A stretch of 63,592 nucleotides of DNA, counting the filler, from Pelomyxa schiedti (Eukaryota > Protista > Evosea), in assembly GCA_020536535.1 (NCBI GenBank). It is 6 parts of 6 records of this genome, joined end to end, with 100 filler letters (N's around TTAATTAATTAA, not from the genome) between each part and the next. Parts side by side here need not be neighbours in the genome. Positions count along the whole stretch, not along the records: positions 36,199 to 48,610 come from JAHLWZ010000345.1; 5 more parts are not named here. One strand, given 5' to 3'. A model generated the notes under the pieces. It had not been told where the DNA came from, ran no database searches, and worked only from the letters and a program-made list of their open reading frames with translations. Position numbers and translations under genes: made by a program. This document shows positions 36,199-48,610 of the stretch, piece after piece. Numbering within the stretch: the first letter of the stretch is position 1; each line of letters begins with the position of its first letter.

Positions 36199-36464
36199 TG
36201 AACCACGAGGTGAAGTCAAAATGACTGCGATTAAGAAAACAAGCTTAGCGAATTGGGAGAAATCCAATGGAGTCCCCGTTTCTCTTGTGGAGTGTTAGAG
36301 CAGTTGGTGGTAACAACGGTACCAAGAAGAGAAAAGGACTCTATGGAGACTCTATCTATTTCTTTCAGGGCCACATCAAAAAATTCCATTTGTGCTTTCC
36401 GTCTGCATGTGACATGGTCAACAACTTGGCCAGTCTTTCGAGTGACACATGTGTCAATAATGAA

Positions 36465-36970
36465 CAGGATTACATGGTAAGCAATAAGCCCTAATCAAAA
36501 AACCATGAAACCATAACACGATTCATAGCAAGCACTCCAAGAAACCTGTCTGGAACATAATAACACCACACCCACGGGCACTAAATTCTCGCGAGCCCAA
36601 ACAAGAAGAGTCACTTTCCGCGCACAAAGCGTAGATTCCTTGAGCATTCCTGAAAACCCAGCCTTCGCCGAACGATAATTCGCAGTAGTATTTAAATAAA
36701 AACCTCCAACAACACCGTAAGCAGAGTAGCTTTGGCCTCGTGTTGTTTAAATACGACCAAAACAACACAACTAGCAGTATTCGATACATAGAGGAGGACA
36801 CTGCTTTTTTTTTTTCGTTTCTTTTTTCGTAACTTGGTTGTTACGAACCTATATTGACTCGTAAGAGAACGCCGTACTGGGAATGGCGCGTGCTGCAATT
36901 GAAACAAAAAATGTTGTGCTGAGCATTCTTGGCATTGCACTGATGGCAATGAGTGGAGGAATTTTGTGTG
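36465..36970 (+). repeat. Diverged duplicate of 38419-39047 (formin 3' end, intergenic DNA and first 27 codons of the ion-channel gene)
   Basis: Near-identical with several substitutions. It lacks a 110-bp block (38501-38610) and a 10-bp block. It ends at a 100-N gap. Confidence 0.9.
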
Positions 36971-37070
36971 NNNNNNNNNNNNNNNNNNNNNNNNNNNNNN
37001 NNNNNNNNNNNNNNNNNNNNNNNNNNNNNNNNNNNNNNNNNNNNNNNNNNNNNNNNNNNNNNNNNNNNNN

Positions 37071-38659
37071 TCTACTTTAAATATCGACGGACTCGAAGTT
37101 CCTTGGCAATTAATTGAAGATGTCTATGCCACAGAACACGTTTTGGCTGAACAAAGTGCCGTTTTTACCTCCCAAACACCACTGGAGGTACAATCTAAGC
37201 ACCAAAGTGTTTACGCCAAGATGGACGAAGTTCAGAGTACAACTTCCTCTACTGTAGGAGATGCACACTTGTTATCTAAAGCAGGTGTGTTTTACATCTT
37301 CCCTGCTACGTTGTGCCTAATCCCTTTTAATTAAGAGATGCTTTTGATTAGTTCTGATCACCCATGGGAGCATATTGTAGAAGCACTTAAACAATTCGAC
37401 GAAGAGTTCTTTCCTGACAAGGGGTTTTGTGAAGCACTCCTGACTTTTCCCCTCCAGGAGATTTCTGTAATACCTAGCTGTTTTTGAATTTTAATCACGA
37501 TTATGCAGGGGAAACCAATTCCAAAGGGTCAAGCGGACATACCAACAGAGTTCCTTTTGGCTGTACGTACGAGAGTTCAGTAGGAATGCCACTGAAATAC
37601 CACAGCTTTCACGTGTGGAAAGAATATCTGAACGCTTGCAGGTGATGGTATTGAGAAAGGAATATCCTTTGTTTGCTTCAGATCTGGAAAAAGTACGCCG
37701 ACTAAGTTTCAGTAAATCTAGGTCATTCCTGGAAATATAGGTTCTACAAAAAACCAAGCGGGGATGTGAAGTAATACTGGAAAGCGGCATCTTGAAACGA
37801 CTGCTTCTTATCATCCTCAAAATGGGCAATTTCTTGAATGAGCACTCCTCACAGCGACGAGGTGCTACAGCATTCAGGCTGCCTCTCCTGGCAGATGTAG
37901 GGCTACTGATCTCTTATTTTATTAACCCCTATTCCCAGTTGTTTGCAACAAAGCAACAAAATGGGAAAAACATCCTTCACTATATCTGTAATATGATCGA
38001 ATCTAATGATTGCTTTAATGACCTGAAATTGATACCTGAAGAACTGGAAAAGATAGACGTCACAAAATGTTACGAAAAACTGTCCTAGATTCCTTGTTGA
38101 TTCAAATTAGTACCCTTTTCTTTCGAGCAGCCAGATTTGCTGAAAGGGCACCTTCAAAAGATGAAAGCTTCATTCCTTGCTCTCAGTGAAGTGTTACCGC
38201 ACGTAGATTCATCCAGCAAGTTCTACACAACATCGTCTGTGTGTAAATCTCTTTTCCCTTCTAAAATAACCTACCCTCAGACGTTTATCCAAAAAGCATT
38301 AGAGGAAATCGACGGCTACATGGCCCGGAACACCGAAGTTGTTGGTCTATTAAACAAAGTTTCCAGGTTTCTTGCAGTAGAGCACCCAACTTTCTGGTAC
38401 ATATTCCATAAGTTTTCCCAGGATTACATGGTAAGCAATAAGCCCTAATCAAAAAACCACGAAACCGTAACACGATTCATAGCAAGCACTCCAAGAAACC
38501 CGGCAAGAGAATGCCATTCTGAAACAAGAAAAAGAGGAGGCACAAGTACTCATTTCACTCAGAATAACCACTTTGCTTACAATTCACCAGGCCGACGCCG
38601 TGGACCGTGTTGTCTGGAACATAATAACACCAGGCACATCCCACACCCACGGGCACTAA
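37071..38659 (+). CDS. Formin FH2-domain protein (5' part lost in gap)
   Basis: LKRLLLIILKMGNFLNEHSSQRRGATAFRLPLLAD-LFATKQQNGKNILHYI matches the FH2 post motif. The last exon (ADAVDRVVWN...GH*) is inferred from the GTAAGC donor at DYM; otherwise the stop is at 38448. Confidence 0.8.
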
Positions 38660-38959
38660 ATTCTCGCGAGCCCAAACAAGAAGAGTCACTTTCCGCGCAC
38701 AAAGCGTAGATTCCTTGAGCATTCCTGAAAACCCAGCTTTCGCCGAACGATAATTCGCAGTATTATTTAAATAAAAACCTCCGACAACACCGTAAGCAGA
38801 GTAGCTTTGGCCTCGTGTTGTTTAAATACGACCAAAACAACACAACTAGCAGTATTCGAATACCTAGAGGAGGACACTGCTTTTTTTTTTTTCGTTTCTT
38901 TTTTCGTAACTTGGTTGTTACGAACATATATTGACTCGTAAGAGAACGCCGTACTGGGA

Positions 38960-41148
38960 ATGGCGCGTGCTGCAATTGAAACAAAAAATGTTGTGCTGAG
39001 CATTCTTGGCATTGCACTGATGGCAATGAGTGGAGGAATTTTGTGTGACTTCACACCGCCTGCAATTGTGCCTCCTTATATGATAAACCCTGGAATTGGG
39101 TGGATGACCGTGGATATAGATATAGCTGTCATAACTGACGTTGATGCTACTACGAAGACTTGTGAATTCGATGGGTATTTTCCTTCGAATGTAATGGTCT
39201 ATTGGCCTACCTACAAGCTCTCTTTTTATCTTAATTTCTTTCCTCTACAGAGTGTTGACTTTATGGTGGGATGAGGAAAGAACTCTACCGTTTACACCAG
39301 GTGAGACTGACGAAGAAACTGGATTTGTAAGATCAAATAACCTTGACTGGAGTGACTCAAATGGTGCACTATCTGATGTGTGGAACCCTGCTTTGATGTA
39401 CTTTTTTCGTATATTCTCGTCTCTTCTGAAGTTCTCCCCTTAAGGTTACTCAATAAAATGGATGCGGAATTAACTGATGTATGTTCAAGTTATTTTTGGT
39501 TTCTATTTCTGAGCTTTCTTATGACCCAAGGAATCCATGCAAATAACAACGGCAGTCCCACCACTGATTACATACTCGGCCCGTGTACAGGGAAGAATAT
39601 ACGCACGTGATGTTCCTTTTGAGGTCCCTCATAACTACCCTTGTTAAAATATTTACATTTGTAGGATTTTCCTTTTGATTCTCCAGTCGTGTATTTGTCC
39701 TTCAGGTATTAGGAACTCTCTCTCTTATGAGCTACTAAGCACTTAATAGATCTCAAGATCAACGTGACATTGTGTGGACATATGATTACATCAAACACCG
39801 TCTTCCCACCTTGAGAGACTTTTTCCCTGAAGCACCAAATGACCACGAGTGTGCCTTGCGTGATTTTGTGGGGCGATATGCAGCTTAACCACTATGCCAG
39901 ATACAATATGGGTGAGTGGACTGCATATGATGTATTCACGCAGGATGAGTCCTTTGTCACTGGACTTGATGCTCGTGTTTACGTCTGCCTAAGAAGGAAC
40001 TCGGACCGATATGTGCTGAGAATTGTATTGCCAATCATATTGATTACTATTGCAAGCTTCGTGGTCTTCTTCATGGGAACTGATTGGAGTACTCGTGTGG
40101 GAACATCAAGTACAATGATGCTTGCTGTAATTGCCTTCCTATTTTTGGTTTCTTCCGAAGTCCCCAGTGGTATTTTTTCCTCTTTCTATTGAAGCCTTCA
40201 TTCGTGGTTCAGGTGCAATTCCAACAACCACTAAACTGGACAAATTCATTTTGCTCAATTTCTGCCTCATTTTTTTCACTAATCTGGAGAACATTATGGC
40301 GAAGGTTTACCATTTACGTATAATAGACAAAGAATTTACATCAGTTACAGGTTCTCCAACCGTCACACGAAGTTAAAGTGAGTAAGGAAATACCATTCAT
40401 TCGGAAACGGCTCGCAAAACTTCACACCAAAACCAGAGAGGGCATATTTCAGGATATCGAAATGATCACGGCACAAAAGAAAGCTGATGCAGACTTCTTG
40501 GAGGAAAAAAATGCAACCAAGAAGGAAGAGGAAGTAGTAAAGGAGGGAAAGAAAGAAAGGGATCCAGAGGAACCAGAAGCGGTACATGAAGACTCCGAGT
40601 CTCATCACCACAAGAGAAAGAAACACTCACATTCCACTGATGGAAGTGGCAGCAGCGACGAAAAAGGCAAGAAGCGCAAGCACCGACGTGATAAGAAGAA
40701 GAAGCACCACCACGAAGAGGAAGAGAGCGGGAAGTCAACAGAAGAAGAAGGAGAGCCAATTGATGAAGGGTTGCAGTCTGAAATGATGAACATAGCCCGC
40801 TCCAGTTCAACTGGTGTAACAAGTACCGGAACTACACTATCTGTGTCACAGGCAAAAACAGCCAAGGCAGTGAAGGCAAAGAAGCAGCTTCTTCTTCTGG
40901 AGAGGTTTGTCTACTGGATTCACCCACTTGGGAAGTCTGGATGGGTCGACACATTCTCAAAAGTACTATTTCCTATAGTACTTATCATCGGAATTATCTA
41001 CTTCTGGGCTTCAAGTGTGAGAGATGACTGTCAGAGTAGAAAGAATGAAGTATTCCATCTATTTGCAGAGGACTACGGCTATGGGAAAGGACCATTTGAC
41101 TATCTGGAATATGATGGCTGGGACCAGTACTATTATTTATTTTTCTAA
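38960..41148 (+). CDS. Pentameric ligand-gated ion channel (Cys-less Pro-loop type)
   Basis: Signal peptide, then loop A VWNPALM-LLN and ITYSARVQGRIYARDVPFE-DFPFDSPVVYLSF. M1 LRRNSDRYVLRIVLPIILITIASFVVFF, M2 TRVGTSSTMMLAVIAFLFLVSSEVP, M3 LDKFILLNFCLIFF, M4 WVDTFSKVLFPIVLIIGIIYFW. Confidence 0.9.
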
Positions 41149-41267
41149 GTTCGGGATTAAAAAAACTTGCGCTCCTTTGTAAAAACTAAAGTTTTTTTTT
41201 TTACTATTCATTTCAAATGGGTAATCATAAAGAAAGAGGACATGTCTAATATTGGAGAGGAAGCGTT

Positions 41268-44200
41268 CTAGTGCTTCTTCTCCAGTGTCTCTACAACTTG
41301 TTCAAAACCTTTTGTTGAATTAGTAGTTAGATAGGGAATGTGTGAGCGACTTGGGCGTGCAGAGGGATCGTGAGCCCAACAATTCTCAATCAAATTGGCT
41401 ATTGGTTCTTTGATCCGGCTGAGAGACAATCTCTTGTGAAAGAAGTGGTTGTTAACAAAGGACATCTTGGAAAAGGAACAACCTTCCCGGAAAGAACAAA
41501 TGCGGTAACTTCTGCTTGAATGTGAGTTGGAGTAAAAGAAAAAATGAACATTACTCCACAGAGAATCAAAGTCGCTATAAGGCTCTTTCCCAGACATTAC
41601 CTGATAGCAAACAACTGCAAAACTACGGTATTTCAACTTCCCGAAAATATTGCCCAAACATAGAATAATTTCATATATAAGCACCTGAACAAATCGGCAC
41701 TAATCGGGCGAATAAGAAAAAGATGTGTGTAATTAATAAACGAACCTTTGTGTGTAATGACCTCCCTCAAGCATTTCCTGATGCCAGTAAATTAGGTGTA
41801 TTATTCTGGAAATAGAGCAGGGAAATACTTACAGGTGCACTGAATACTGGCGTCCCAACCTATGGTGATTTCTTAGAAATAGATATTTTTTCTACGGCTC
41901 ACCCCAGAAGTAAATGTTTGCGATGTAGCTTGTGTTACCCCTCTTGTGGTGCCAAAGTCTTCAGTTAAATTAGGAAGGAAAAACAAGCGGAGTTACGAAC
42001 CTGTAATCTTGCAATTCACAACTTCTGTGCGATCAAGAGAATAAACCTTCCAGTAGTTTGGTATCTTTCAAAGAAAAAACAAAACTGATAACTCAATAGT
42101 ACCAGTAGGTTATCAGTCTGCTTCACATGTTAGATAACAATCTTGGCAGTCATTATCTTTTCTTTCTTATACACTCCTTTATTTAGAAATATTGATAAGA
42201 GCAATAGCACACCTTCAAGTCGCGATGAATGATATGGCTTGAATGGAGGAAGGCCATTCCTTTTGCTCTTTACCAACGACAATTTATTTAAATTATATTT
42301 CAAATGCACACCTCTGGCACAGTCGAGTATGCACTTAATCTTCAATTTTGTGGAAAACTTGTGGTTTTTCATACAAACTCTGAGATTTCCAAGTGGGAAA
42401 AACTCCTGTGAGAACATTCAATTTTCTTCTATCGTCTTGGTTCATACAGTTACTATGGCAAGGTGCCCTGGACTCCGCACAGCACCGATAAAAGTAACAA
42501 TCTAGAAGATGGTCAGTGACTTGGCTGCGCTCATTTTTTGTGCAAACCTGAGGACATTTGAGGGCTTCCAGGGTTTGAACTTCGTTGTGGAACTCTTGAA
42601 ATTTATTTCCAGATTCTTGGTTCTGCCAAATTGGGTGCGTGGAATAAAACCAATCGAAGTACCTTTACAATTTTCACAGCTACCTCTTGTCCTCGCCTTT
42701 GAGCGTGAGCCAATGTTACCAAATTAAAAGAGTTTTTTATACCACGCAGCCTTGTAGACTATACCGTAAGAGCCCTCACCGATAGGTGGTTCTTCCAACT
42801 GTAGTGATGGTAAAAAAAACAAAAAAAAGTAGAATGCAGAACCATGAGTTCATTATAATCCAGACTAGTTGAAAGCCTTGACTCGAGTGCAACTTTTATT
42901 GGAATATACTCTACTGCATGTGAGACGCAGAAAGGAATCTTTTTTTTTACCTTTCTTTTCCTTTATTGTTGCCATAAGAATGATGTCTGTGTCTATTATG
43001 GTTGTGCATAGTACGGTGAATTTTACATCAATTGTTGTTTCTGTGTGCTTTGTTCTATTAGAGAGTCAATATTGCAAGAGACAACACACTCCAAGGAGTA
43101 CATCCTGTTCAGGTTCAAATTTGCAGGTGTATTTGTGGGATGTGGGTATCAGTAACTGATACTGAATTTTGCTTCGTGTAGGATTGAATATGGAAATGCT
43201 GTTGTCTAGTTGGGTTCCAACAGCAGCTTGACGAGTTCCCAGACCAAAATCTATCTTGAAAGTTGAAACCTAACCGGAAATATGAGTCCAAAGGGAGAAA
43301 AACTTGCAATTATACCTTTAAACAAAAGTCTGCAGGAGGCACAGGGCTGTTCAGGTGTTACAACTAAGGTGGAAAAAACGGAACAACCTGCAGGATTTGA
43401 GCAAGGGTGCGACTGCTTTATCAAACTGAGTGGTGGGTGACAATTCAACTAGCTCTACAGAAGCTTCTGGCTCCTCAAATGAAAATAATTCATCCAACGA
43501 TGCCGTGTATAGCTTTCTTAAGACCACCCAAAACGTAAAACTAAATATAGCAGATCAAGAAAGTCAAGTTACTTGTAGATAATAATTGCAGCAACAGTTC
43601 CACCAATTATCAATGCAGCCCCAACGGAAACAGGTACCGCAATTTCAATAGCCAGATAGGATTTCGGTTTGCAGGATTTTGAAGGTGCCGTTGTGTTCAA
43701 AACCACTCCTTCAAGTCTGTGAGGTTGCACTGTTGCACACAACTTTGGGGAAGAACTTCCCCCAGGAATCACGTAAACTTTTGTCCAGTGGTCAGTGGCA
43801 TTTGCAGCAGGGGCGGCCCATAATTTCCTGCAGTTCACATGATCCACACACAATGACCCCGAGTAGGCTTCCTCGGAGGTAAAACTGATGTCAGTTGGCT
43901 CACCAACCATTCTCTTCTCTGAATTAATTTCCCCTACAGTGAAAACGCCGTTGTCAGGGCCAATCCAAACGACGTCAAACAAGGTGCTCCCACAATCGCT
44001 TCCCGGCGGCTCGGCGGTGCCCACGGTGCCCACGCTGTCCCATAAGTCGAACAGGGTGGTCTGCTCGCTGCTCCTGTTATAAATAACCATCGTGGTCGGC
44101 TTTGTCCGCGGCTGGCTCGCAGCTATATATAGCTCCTGATCACAGTGGCTCCAGACGACGGCCGTTGGCTCAATTACCTGCTGAGCAGACGGGCCTGACC

Positions 44201-44642
44201 ACGAACGGACTTTCGTGGCTACGCAAACGGCGGTTCCGTCGTACGGCAGCGCTCCGTCTGCGACTGCGCTCAGATCCAGGACGTACATGTCAAAGTCGTA
44301 GAGGTTGGTGGCTCGGCAGCTGAGGTAGAGGCTGCGGTAGTCGTACTCGGCGGCGCCGGCGGAGCAGGGCCCGAGGATGGGGGGCGAGAGCATGCAGACC
44401 TGGCGCGAGTCGATTATGGGAGCGGTCCTGGGGTCCACGTCGTCACAGCTGGAAGGGACGTAGAAATCCACGAGGGCGTAGAGGGTAGTGTTTGAAGTGT
44501 TCATGTTCTTGCCGTCTTGGACTGCGAGGCCAAAGGCCCTCATCCGCGTCTCGCCTGAGGCGATGCACCCACAAGGCAATCCCACAATTACGATCATCCA
44601 CACAGCAGCAAAACACAGCACCGACGGGTACGCGGGCTCCAT
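41268..44642 (-). CDS. Single-pass transmembrane TKL-group kinase (Entamoeba TMK-like)
   Basis: Signal peptide, about 300-aa Cys-containing ectodomain, TM IEIAVPVSVGAALIIGGTVAAIII. Kinase motifs IGEGSYGIVYK, EFFPLGNL, HRDLK-TDNLL-VYSLDRTEVVNCKIT-DFG, GKEPY and CWAHDPSARPS. Confidence 0.88.
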
Positions 44643-45170
44643 GAGAATCTTTGAGTGAAAAACGGTTTTCGTTTCTCAGACATCAGAACCGGGAATTCGA
44701 TCGCACCTAACCCACAATGGCTCTCTGGCACCTCCGACAAAATGCGAACCGGGCAGAGATAGCAAAATCAGTTCTTGCGCTTGGGGTATTTCTACAGCTG
44801 ATGACCGTAAGGGATGGCGTAGATTTTTTGCTGATTGCAAACTAACTCCAATGCCTCGTGGACTCAGGCCACTGGCCAGTCCCAATTTTTGTAGCCTGTG
44901 TTACAGACACAGCTTTAAAAAAAAAAAAAAAGAAAAAAGAGATCAATTGGTACGCCGTGTCCAGACTTCCCAACCTTAACGAAAATGCTGGTTTTTGTGC
45001 GCAACGGTGGTTGGTGAGGATAGTCAGCAAAAAAGGGCACACTGCTTGTTCACGAAGATGGTGCCAGTCCTTCAGCCATAGTGTAGCAAGGAAAGTTCTA
45101 TTTCCAAATGTGGAAACATGGAAAACGGCACAGTGAAGAGTTGGGTCAAGAATCTTGGCACAGTGGTTTT

Positions 45171-48100
45171 TCAAAGTATTCCTGTCTCAGCTCCCTCCAC
45201 TTCAGCTAGTGTGGCAAAATCTGGGGTTTTTACGTCACCAACTTCGAATATCAGACATAGGCCATTGATATTGATGTCTGGCTCAGGTGCATGGAGATCC
45301 GTGTTAGTATCTGCGTGCTCGGTCTCTTTCTTGCTCTTCTTCTTCTTTGTGTTCCGAGGCTCATATAGAGGTTTTATTAAACGCAGCCCCTGTGCTTCAT
45401 TCGCTCTGACTTGGTAAATGGCCCCCTTTGTGTGAAGCTTGTATGGTTTTTTGTTCATGGCTCTCTGAAATATCAAACAAAGCTGCGGCTGTGGCGTGGC
45501 ATGATGACTGAATTTGCGCAAGACACTCTCTACTTTGGAGCTAACAAATTCGTCGCGGTCCTTTGCTTCAGCAATGATGTTTCCGCCCTTGATATCTATC
45601 ATGCATTTGTCGGCTGTCCGGATCAAGTTCTGCACGTGAAGGCCTGGAATTGTAGTCAAATACTTAGGAAATGGGTCATCCGTTGGAGAAAGGGCCGGTA
45701 TAATGATATCTTGCATGTTCTTTGGGATAACAGTCTGCTTCTTGAGTGCTGCCTCAAACTTGAGGGAATGGGTCAGACCATAGAGGTGATAAGCCAATGC
45801 AGTGAGATACGGGAGGACTTGTTGGCCCCCCAATCCCCCACGGTACGACGCTGCTGCAATGGCAACACCGGCATACTGCTCCAAAAGGGACCCGTCACTC
45901 TTTCCCCCCACCACACTCTGAGTAGATATTTTGGCTCTGAGCTGTTCCACTAAAGTGGGGTTGCTCCAAGCTTCGCAAAGAGGTATTCTCCTTTGTGCGG
46001 TAGCCAAGAATCCAGAGGTATTGTCTTTGAGTCCACAGAGTGATAAGAAAAGGAGTGGCTCAAGATTTATGCTGGGGAAGAAGGCAAACAGTGGTGCAGG
46101 AACGGCTTCCCGAGTGGACTCCTCCACAAGCATGTTATTATCACGCCAGAATTTGTATACAAGCTTATTCTGGTGGCTCTCCAGTCTCTTATTATTCTTC
46201 CCTTCGATGTACAGCTGCGCAAAATGTGCAGATATCACCCCCGACGCCCCTTTCATACGGGAGAAATACATCAGCACCTGACCGGCGCGACCCATATTTG
46301 TTTCATAAATGGTATCTTTTTTGGCAAGAACTCCTTCCCGTATGCCTGCAAAAAGGTCATCAAGAATTGCCAGTGGTGATAGTCCTTGCAGATCTGCAGA
46401 TGGGCATGATAACATAGTTTCCAACTGCCGGAACATCGCCAGAACAAACAGTCCTCTGCACGTGACAGCACAATGCTCCACAAATTGGGCAAGATGTTGG
46501 TCGATAGCCCGGCACTTTTCCAGAATTTCCGTGTAATTTGGAACTCTGGAGACTTGCAAAGTATTCACCGTTGGAGCAGAAGGCCTCACAAACAAATGAC
46601 ACCACAGGTAAGGCTTGTTTACGTCGGTGCAAGACGAACTGGAACTTAGCATATTTACTGCGCGAGAATTGGTGCCTGCCAAAATAACGGTCAGGTCTAA
46701 GGCCAGGCATAGATTTCTCATAAATGCCAAGTCTTCCTTCTGGTCTTTTCCAGGTATTTCGTCGATAAATATAACAGGTTTCTTGGGCAATGAGGACCAC
46801 TTTTGTAGAAATCTAGATCTGCTCATTCCTGCTGTGATTTTGTGGCTGATGTCCATCTCAAGAAGTGTATATGGAAGCCTCTGTGGGTAATATTCTTGCC
46901 TGCTTGACTTGCGTGAAGGTAAAGGGAGGGCATCTCGACTCCTGCGTTCGTTTGTAACGGGGTCCCACTCGATGCTGAAGCACCAGTCCAGCCAGGCGAT
47001 AGTCCAGAGTTCCCGTGACGCCCCAAATAAGACATTGCAATGGGGGAATCGGCCCTTCTTGTGAAGTTCCCCGGAATCTCTTGCCACACAATCACAGAAG
47101 GAAGCTGACAAAGGTGTAAAGCATTTATATATATCCTGTGTTTCCCCATCATAAACAAGGTATCTATTTGTGATGTTAGTGGAGTATTCCACGGGAAGAA
47201 AAACTCAAGTATGTGAATACAAACATTACGTCTTCATTCAAAGCAAAAGCAAGCTGTGTCTTTCCCATTCCGGAGGAACCATCCAGAATAATAAATGGTT
47301 TGTCTGTGTGCGGTGTGCACTTCAGTGTCTGCATATATGCTATTGATTTTTCCAGTTCAACCAACGTCTTATTGGAACCGGCCATCGCTCTCCCTGTTCT
47401 GTAATAGTGCTCAACTTCACTGGTGCTAGAATCTATATGAGCTGGGAAATAGGTGTGTAAATTTTCTCTTCTGACCACAAGCAGATTTACCATTTATCTC
47501 TATAGGAGGCTCCTTCCCTCTCATTGCTTCAATTAGTCTTAGGGACAAGTAGTGTGGGTTCAAATACACAGAGGCCTAAATAATGCAAGTCAGAAATATG
47601 AAAAACCTGGAGGAGGGTACGGACCTTGACGAGTAACTCATCGGAGATGCCACCTTCCAAAAGGCACCACTGAATGATTTGGTTGCACTCATCCATTGAG
47701 AGTTCCACAGTGTTTGTATTCAGAAATTGCTCTCCTGGCGGAACAGAAATCTCGCCATCTGAGCATATTATTGTCCTTCCAACTCTAGGTGGGGTGCCAA
47801 TGTCCTTCTCTCCACTTTCCACTGGGTGTTCCATCTTTCGCATGTCTTGCAGGTTTTTCGTCTTACTGCCACTTTGGCATGCAGTGCCTTGAACCAGTGC
47901 TGCTGTGGATTTTTTCATGGTTTTTGACTTTGCGCCTCCTGAGTCCAGCAAGTTGATTGGAGATGAAGGAGGAGTTTTCTTTGGTGTTTTTGCAGGCAGT
48001 GCATTGTGAGTGATCTTGGTGGTTGAGACGACGTTGCAATCCGCATCCTTATTTTCTTTCTCGGCCCTGTTAGAGCCAGTTGCTTGTTGTTGTTGTTGTT

Positions 48101-48610
48101 GGTTGCTGGTCACAAGAAATGTTGGAGACTTCTTGACAACAATTTCCAGCTTGCTTACAGTTGGGGGACCAACGTTGCTTCTGTCATTAGTGTCATTCGA
48201 TCGGCCGACAATTCTTTCGGCTGCTGTTGGCTTCTTTCCAGGTGTTGGTGATTTTTCCAAGGACAGAGCATGTGGGGGTGCAGTCTGCCTTTGCTGCCTG
48301 AGAGTTGATTTTACTGGAGGCAGCTGTTGAGTTCTGGGGGAGGACTTTGTTGTTTGCTTCAGAGCCCGTAGTTGTGGTTTACTAAACAAAGGGGTTTTTT
48401 TATCCCGTACAGCAGGACTCGTAGCAGCAGTGGACGTAACCAACGTGTCGGCGGCATCATCGTCGTCGTCATCATCACCTTGGTTCCGGCGGTCCTCGTG
48501 GCTGCTAATCCTGCTGTGGGGGATGGGCACGGAATGGTCGCCTTGCTGCTGCACTGTGTCGGTGTCCACCGCGACCACGGGTGTGGCGGCGACATCCTTG
48601 TCGTGTCGGG
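45171..48610 (-). CDS. Crinkler/CR-type protein: disordered N-terminus, P-loop NTPase and PD-(D/E)xK-like nuclease (5' end at contig join)
   Basis: ORFs 47529-48578, 47176-47493 and 45171-47192 join in frame through three GT-AG introns. Walker A PFIILDGSSGMGKTQLAF, Walker B PVIFIDEIP, LAFMRNL, LAGTNSRAVN, and nuclease-like RTADKCMIDIKGGNIIAEAKDR. Confidence 0.75.

Follow-up and report, generated by a model that had tools for sequence, protein, structure and literature searches.

The window analysed here is a stretch of 63,592 nucleotides, filler included, from the genome of Pelomyxa schiedti, an archamoeba that lives free and anaerobically and the single-cell genome of which appeared in 2022 (PMC8887013). 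Its positions 36199–48610 are an entire scaffold of 12,412 bp, and on the plus strand of this scaffold positions 38960–41148 are occupied by a gene of nine exons and eight short GT..AG introns, a span that runs exactly from the start to the stop of the coding sequence (CDS). Once the seven introns seen in RNA and the predicted first intron are removed, a frame of 595 codons lies open from the ATG at 38960 to the stop codon; a raw listing of open reading frames (ORFs) on the same strand contains fragments of it only. The product is identical, letter for letter, to P0001, that is, to GenBank KAH3763852.1, the protein record held by this scaffold, which bears the automatically assigned name "nicotinic acetylcholine receptor beta-2 [Pelomyxa schiedti]". 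We conclude that the locus is very probably an expressed nuclear gene of P. schiedti encoding one subunit of a Cys-less ion channel of the pentameric ligand-gated class (pLGIC), or Pro-loop receptor, and that it is a member of a small family whose representatives have to date come from free-living Archamoebae and their environmental relatives.

Evidence for the transcript came from four single-cell RNA-seq runs of one study on the same organism, which contain up to half of the words sampled from the stretch. The RNA contigs placed on 38600–41500 are 100% identical to the genome and cover the gene contiguously from exon 3 to the 3′ untranslated region (UTR), with splice joints at seven of the eight introns (Table 1). 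Record 1 of contig X1 spans exon 3 and the membrane helices M1–M3 and reaches into the loop-coding part of exon 9, and further overlapping contigs extend to the 3′ UTR at 41179; therefore, the long M3–M4 reading frame is truly part of the channel mRNA, and the worry that it might not be spliced to the channel exons, raised in an earlier reading of the DNA alone (the sequence-only reading), is removed. A template-switch oligonucleotide stands at an RNA contig start at 39375 and, because another lies internally at 40740, the former is no proof of a transcription start. The RNA joints also ruled out a version of exon 4 taken from the longest genomic ORF (GPCTGKNIRT, with a cysteine), which is in the wrong frame, and an apparent frameshift near 39850 disappeared with the removal of a 52-nt intron that is seen in RNA.

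These data effectively refute the view that the gene is an artefact, whether a contaminant, a pseudogene or an assembly chimera. It is true that the assembly has scaffolding gaps and was made from amplified single-cell DNA, that prokaryotic endosymbionts live in Pelomyxa (PMC10579272), and that a duplicated contig end lies 2 kb upstream of the gene. Rather than a second gene or a true 2-kb tandem duplication, this copy is probably the redundant end of a contig, an allele or a variant of the assembly, which scaffolding joined on; an RNA-based scaffolder was used for the genome (PMC8887013). Against an artefact stand the intact reading frame, the spliced transcripts without a single mismatch, introns that match the size and type reported for the P. 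schiedti genome (PMC8887013), eukaryotic genes on both sides (a formin with an FH2 domain upstream and a protein kinase downstream) and an orthologue in Mastigamoeba.

That the product is a pLGIC of an amoeba, as had been proposed, is supported in agreement by Pfam, phmmer and AlphaFold/Foldseek, the organism being a member of the Archamoebae. Exon 7 alone (89 aa) retrieved 228 PDB chains at E up to 10, and among the matches listed 60 of 60 were pLGICs, the best being DeCLIC, 5-HT3A, sTeLIC, the nicotinic acetylcholine receptor (nAChR) and ELIC (E ∼3e-6, best 2.5e-6). The Pfam family PF02932 (Neur_chan_memb) was matched at 30.8 bits against a cut-off of 28.1 (E 4.5e-7). Using phmmer, residues 51–328, from the ectodomain through M3, were aligned with ELIC at E 3e-10, followed by DeCLIC, nAChR beta, 5-HT3A, sTeLIC and GLIC. 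An AlphaFold2 monomer model, made from a 48-sequence alignment, has a pLDDT >90 over most of the beta-sandwich and M1–M3, and its helices correspond to M1 (245–267), M2 (272–293), M3 (307–332) and M4 (525–553). The top Foldseek matches of this model are all pLGICs (E ∼1e-17), headed by sTeLIC, DeCLIC and ELIC, and VIA-align superimposes it on solved pLGICs with Z 22–24 and an rmsd of 3.2–4.2 Å over ∼300 residues spanning aa 41–560. Further, all residues that are near-invariant over the 48 homologues are present (P166, D168, W216, the pre-M1 R242, P254 in M1, F266, L284 at 9′ and P298 at 23′). The ranking of structures was set aside as a test of prokaryotic versus animal affinity: Foldseek favours bacterial channels, VIA-align puts the animal anionic receptors (GABA-A, GlyR and RDL) on top but effectively tied with other pLGICs, and such scores do not discriminate.

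In the spliced protein the Pro-loop motif FPFD occupies residues 165–168, and the only cysteines are C29, C68, C239, C317 and C557, so that no Cys-loop is possible. The disulfide loop of the animal type (C-x13-C around FPxD) is absent, Arg and Val standing at the canonical Cys positions, and the residue check of the whole protein thus agrees with the loop without flanking cysteines seen in the DNA. M2 reads D(-4′)W S(-2′)T(-1′)R(0′)VGTSST(6′)MML(9′)...E(21′)VP(23′); R0′, T6′, L9′, P23′ and the Ser/Thr pair at -2′/-1′ are as described before splicing was known, and with neither Glu nor Pro-Ala the pore motif is of neither the classical cation nor the classical anion type. A call on ion selectivity from sequence was dropped because the signals conflict. 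D-4′, E21′ and the acidic ectodomain and vestibule (38 D+E vs 15 K+R in the ectodomain, net charge ∼-23) favour cations, whereas the lack of Glu at -1′, the resemblance of TRVG to anionic ARVG and the Lys-rich pre-M4 helix weaken that reading or are anion-like; the lack of Pro-Ala at -2′/-1′ in turn argues against a classical anion filter, and R0′ is uninformative because it is common to cation- and anion-type M2 helices in the alignment. A scan of the ectodomain for an N-glycosylation sequon found none.

Relatives were sought with exon 7 in an exhaustive HMMER search of 1.84 billion representative proteins, which returned 90 proteins at E up to 1e-3. Three of these lie at E up to 1e-10, namely Pelomyxa P0001 itself, P0002 and P0003, and the next match is P0004, a 96-aa fragment (E 4.7e-10). 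In EukProt, P0003 stands as a "hypothetical protein" of 484 aa from Mastigamoeba balamuthi. The source of P0002 is L001, a genomic contig of 3.7 kb and 54% GC from a public run; an upstream exon encodes the signal peptide and first strands, so that the gene call is truncated. P0004, on a 183-kb metagenome contig (L002, GC 40%), corresponds to a single exon of an orthologue rich in introns. Common to the four lineages are ectodomain motifs, an M1-M2-M3 region that hardly varies and the M4 motif (V/I)D..S(K/R)..FP; the M1-M2 exon is 57–68% identical between genera, which indicates purifying selection on the pore. The intron right after M3 (between K and V, phase 0) has the same position in Pelomyxa and L002. 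Intron 1, considered as a second conserved intron between Pelomyxa and L001, was rejected since that of L001 lies about four codons upstream, and so was a tandem paralogue in L002 suggested by a 15-aa match downstream, a region that encodes an unrelated Cys-rich protein.

We also observed that, in L002 (3001–3801; ENA ERZ21831265 ctg81243l) and in L003, the channel orthologue stands beside a [FeFe]-hydrogenase and a ferredoxin-domain gene, that the L002 organism is likely another anaerobic amoeba, and that M2 of L002 is split by an intron that Pelomyxa lacks. An insert with six cysteines (QCDC...C.CG...D.C.C) lies between the strands preceding the Pro-loop in the ectodomains of Mastigamoeba P0003 (∼118–147) and P0002 (∼64–90), is absent from Pelomyxa and L002, and may form a small knob, rich in disulfides, at the outer face. 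M3–M4 regions of ∼60–120 aa also occur in P0088 (on L004), P0020, P0072 and P0038, further Cys-less homologues taken from public runs and metagenomes; therefore, the combination of a Cys-less ectodomain and a long loop is not confined to Archamoebae. Word-index searches returned only the query itself and one Logan protein for the full protein, and only its own Mastigamoeba and Pelomyxa sequences for a three-sequence profile, blanks that are uninformative given low complexity and an 8000-candidate limit. A scan of 185,579 prokaryotic genomes with patterns from the family profile found no relative; since the patterns are highly specific, absence cannot be concluded from this result.

The M3–M4 loop, first put at ∼185 aa, comprises 192 aa (residues 333–524) by the AlphaFold helix limits. 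Residues 395–470 (∼76 aa) are rich in K, E, H and S (19 K+R, 23 D+E and 10 H) and predicted to be disordered (pLDDT 32–47), and this insert makes up most of the excess length of the Pelomyxa loop. Helices are predicted after M3 at 336–343 and 345–394, the start of this segment being conserved with L001, and a predicted Lys-rich helix at 489–520 leads into M4; these flanks have a pLDDT of 58–87 from an alignment that is only 4 sequences deep there. Loop length is graded over the family, from ∼70 aa in L002 through ∼116 aa in Mastigamoeba P0003 and ∼120 aa in L001 (P0002) to the 192 aa of Pelomyxa. An "animal-like" loop, as claimed by the sequence-only reading, is thus not a trait of the family, and we read the resemblance to the MX/disordered/MA loop of animal receptors as an analogous layout rather than shown homology. 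The loop-coding exon 9 alone gave no match in a word-index protein search, a blank that low complexity and the candidate limit again make uninformative. The likeness of M4 to that of GABA/Gly receptors stood in part: searched by itself, the M4 piece matches the M4 of GABA-A pi and of the glycine receptor best among PDB entries, and in register, but the E values (0.16–3.6) are not significant, and its motif also occurs in many short-loop prokaryote-type homologues and is therefore a trait of the superfamily, not specific to GABA/Gly receptors. M4 is followed by a 42-aa aromatic and acidic tail that none of the relatives has.

Several results weigh against the assignment to a working ligand-gated channel. 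The Pfam ligand-binding domain PF02931 (Neur_chan_LBD) scored 22.3 bits, under its curated cut-off of 26 (E 1e-4); we nevertheless judged the ectodomain to be present from the alignment of aa 51–245 with that of ELIC, a beta-rich model with a pLDDT of ∼90 and structural alignments that begin at aa 41. The canonical loop A Asp (WxPD) is replaced by Ala. No aromatic box could be assigned, so the ligand site may be non-canonical or lost. Exon 1 and intron 1 (38960–39250) have no RNA contig and are predicted; they are backed by the GenBank model, by homology of the encoded strands to relatives (alignment from aa 45) and by a pLDDT of ∼92 (aa 51–80). We infer pentamer formation, ligand and conductance alike from membership of the pLGIC family. 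By that analogy, a plasma-membrane channel would be built from five subunits, probably identical ones as a single close copy was observed; the subunit interfaces of the acidic ectodomain would be where a small ligand or ion from outside the cell binds; the Pro-loop and the M2–M3 linker would couple binding to the opening of the L9′ gate in M2; and the cytoplasmic loop may serve trafficking or regulation. A protein that kept the fold without this work, as a constitutive leak, an organellar channel or a scaffold, would suit the loss of the WxPD Asp, the very acidic ectodomain without a sequon, the unusual C-terminal tail and the low-complexity loop. However, we hold it to be quite improbable, as the gating elements (Pro-loop, pre-M1 Arg, M1 Pro, L9′ and the M2–M3 Pro) are conserved in four lineages and the M1-M2 exon bears the mark of purifying selection described above.

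A ligand-gated channel subunit remains our reading of the gene, and we compared it with the known systems. Like ELIC (Erwinia/Dickeya), GLIC, sTeLIC and DeCLIC, it is Cys-less with an FPFD Pro-loop; ELIC is its best sequence match among solved structures, and many prokaryote-type homologues have its M4 motif, as D..S(R/K)..FP. Unlike prokaryotic pLGICs, it has eight spliceosomal introns (seven of them seen in RNA), a signal peptide and eukaryotic neighbours, its identity to them is ∼20–25%, its M3–M4 linker of 192 aa compares with ∼3–16 aa in 18 of 19 short-loop homologues, and it has Ser/Thr where ELIC has Ser-Glu before R0′; by its loop, introns and neighbours it is not a member of the prokaryotic group. 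The Cys-less Pro-loop receptors described from protists and lophotrochozoans likewise lack the Cys-loop cysteines while keeping the loop proline, and they too have a variable cytoplasmic M3–M4 region and sometimes extra C-terminal sequence (PMC4795631). The animal anionic receptors resemble it in the R0′-V-G start of M2 and in layout, a long loop having a helix that leads into M4, but it lacks their Cys-loop disulfide and their Pro-Ala at -2′/-1′; among the 90 matches of the M1-M2 search, for the most part unnamed, no anionic receptor was identifiable. The nAChRs belong to the same superfamily, and their beta chains are significant PDB matches (E 2e-8 and weaker). The gene is not an nAChR beta-2 orthologue, however: it has no Cys-loop and Thr instead of Glu at -1′, and ELIC scores better. 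The GenBank name is misleading because it was transferred automatically.

Scored with an Archamoebae profile, short-loop Cys-less proteins reached 65–92 bits, compared with 36–57 bits for Cys-loop proteins of the GER type. The former, of metagenomic origin, have loops of ∼13 aa, and the single one with a name is from a Planctomycetota metagenome-assembled genome; the three named matches among the latter are molluscan nAChR-like proteins. A maximum-likelihood tree (35 rows, 344 columns, LG+C20) was built on a set that was gathered by similarity to the query, held no identifiable anionic Cys-loop receptor and was without the published references of the eukaryotic Cys-less clade. In this tree the Archamoebae form a clade (100/99) on the Cys-less side of a 94/94 branch, a side without resolution inside, and the GER-type proteins form a separate starred clade. 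A tree in which the Archamoebae and the Cys-loop clade stand together was not rejected by an approximately unbiased (AU) test (delta lnL 7.9, p 0.115). Of the earlier description of the ectodomain as "prokaryote-like", therefore, the similarity in scores holds, but the tree gives no resolved placement and the AU test leaves room for a Cys-loop grouping. The nearest clusters of a protein language model were all eukaryotic (Nematoda, Haptophyta, Mollusca and diatoms), which is a lead only.

The Archamoebae family may plausibly, if tentatively, be a branch, passed on by vertical descent and lost from other Amoebozoa, of an ancient clade of eukaryotic Cys-less Pro-loop receptors known from stramenopiles, green algae, alveolates, filastereans/choanoflagellates and lophotrochozoans. 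In keeping with this, the gene has eight spliceosomal introns, one of which, after M3, has its position and phase in common with a relative; all family members have a cytoplasmic loop; the language-model neighbours, with the same caution, are eukaryotic; no close bacterial relative was found in the 1.84 billion proteins searched with HMMER or, with very specific patterns, in the 185,579 prokaryotic genomes; the AU test allows a grouping with eukaryotic Cys-loop receptors; and a eukaryotic Cys-less clade is documented (PMC4795631). Vertical descent has against it a tree that lacks reference sequences of that very clade, best matches of the bacterial type (ELIC, and the short-loop metagenomic proteins over the Cys-loop ones) and a patchy distribution in Amoebozoa. 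Lateral transfer, in which an ancestor of the Archamoebae took up a short-loop bacterial pLGIC that then gained introns, a signal peptide and an independently grown loop, is conceivable but doubtful. It would agree with the position of the family among short-loop prokaryote-type sequences and apart from the Cys-loop clade, with the higher profile scores of the former, with ELIC as best solved match over the ectodomain and M1–M3, with the finding of close relatives in Archamoebae-like anaerobes only and with the spread of loop lengths in the family (70 to 192 aa), which an insert that is young and unconstrained would be expected to show. However, full-length identity to any prokaryote-type match is ∼20–25%, so that there is no candidate donor, the Cys-less half of the tree is unresolved and the AU test is not decisive, the sampling is biased by the query, and many intron gains would be required.

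Cys-less pLGICs were, as the sequence-only reading had stated, already reported in protists: Jaiteh, Taly & Henin listed 126 protist pLGICs from 22 genera in 2016, Cys-less forms among them (PMC4795631). That inventory defined the eukaryotic Cys-less clade and noted a highly variable M3–M4 region with occasional extra C-terminal sequence; its text nowhere contains the word "Amoebozoa", the groups it covers being stramenopiles, chlorophytes, opisthokont protists and alveolates (PMC4795631). A diatom survey of 2024 gives the same picture, and according to one study no ionotropic receptor roots at the ancestor of humans and Amoebozoa (PMC7947827). In the literature searched, including the Pelomyxa genome paper (PMC8887013), we found no link of Mastigamoeba or Amoebozoa to pLGICs. 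The kind of protein is thus known, as Cys-less protist pLGICs with variable loops since 2016, and the gene itself was already in GenBank under its misleading name; the Pelomyxa/Mastigamoeba family appears to be the first of this kind noted in Amoebozoa.

Elsewhere on the scaffold, three long intronless ORFs stand in a row on the minus strand, in a genome that is otherwise intron-rich. None of them matched Pfam; the 673-aa ORF has hypothetical proteins of fungi and clusters of the Crinkler family as its language-model neighbours (0.90–0.94, a lead only), and a mobile or effector-like NTPase gene is a possibility here. A further intronless ORF of 357 aa lies in a GC-rich island and has no Pfam family and only weak Atlas neighbours.

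Table 1. Features of the Pelomyxa scaffold (positions are those of the window)
Feature	Position	Strand	Description
Duplicate of 38419–39047	36465–36970	+	98–99% identity; intergenic region and first 88 nt of CDS; ends exactly at 100-N gap 36971–37070
Formin exons	37792–38448	+	FH2 domain, E 4e-8
Exon 1	38960–39174	+	Start codon, signal-peptide-like helix (aa 2–23), first ectodomain beta strands; predicted, GenBank-concordant
Intron 1	39175–39250	+	76 nt, GT..AG; predicted; needed for frame; same in GenBank model
Exon 2	39251–39397	+	WWDEERTL and VWNPAL, the W.D..L and W.P motifs of pLGIC ectodomains; 3′ joint 39397/39445 in RNA contigs X1 and X2
Intron 2	39398–39444	+	RNA joint
Exon 3	39445–39478	+	34 nt; RNA joints on both sides
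Intron 3	39479–39530	+	RNA joint
Exon 4	39531–39623	+	Beta strand preceding Pro-loop; RNA joints on both sides
Intron 4	39624–39664	+	RNA joint
Exon 5	39665–39705	+	Pro-loop, FPFD at 39668–39679, no flanking cysteines; RNA joints
Intron 5	39706–39749	+	RNA joint
Exon 6	39750–39848	+	Beta 7–8 region; RNA joints
Intron 6	39849–39900	+	RNA joint
Exon 7	39901–40169	+	Beta 9–10, pre-M1 Arg, M1 (40007–40072), M2 pore helix (40085–40150); RNA
Intron 7	40170–40212	+	RNA joint
Exon 8	40213–40304	+	M2–M3 linker and M3 (40233–40304 plus 40351–40356; model helix 307–332); RNA joints
Intron 8	40305–40350	+	RNA joint
Exon 9	40351–41148	+	Loop (40357–40932), M4 (40933–41019), 42-aa C-terminal tail, stop (41146–41148); RNA contigs 40349–41179
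Disordered K/E/H-rich loop part	40543–40770	+	Within exon 9; from pLDDT and composition
Protein kinase	41268–41684	-	C-terminal lobe
357-aa ORF	43569–44642	-	Intronless; signal peptide, C-terminal membrane anchor; GC 54–59% vs ∼40% around
Three ORFs	45171–48578	-	673 aa; 105 aa, Walker A motif GSSGMGKT; 349 aa, low complexity

To our knowledge, pLGICs outside animals are almost uncharacterised. The GenBank entry should read "Cys-less pentameric ligand-gated ion channel subunit". The graded natural series of loops (∼70, 120 and 192 aa) on one conserved core could be used to probe what an intracellular domain adds to such a channel. In what we regard as an unlikely course of events, a bacterial short-loop pLGIC was transferred to Archamoebae, which then grew their own M3–M4 domain of 70–192 aa with a post-M3 helix and a basic pre-M4 helix; if true, the family would be a natural, independent replay of the step from a bacterial-type channel to an animal-type receptor with an intracellular domain. 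Amoebozoa are the supergroup sister to the animal-fungal lineage. Overall, an expressed family in anaerobic amoebae adds a supergroup to the range of these channels and bears on whether the last eukaryotic common ancestor had them or whether they spread by transfer.

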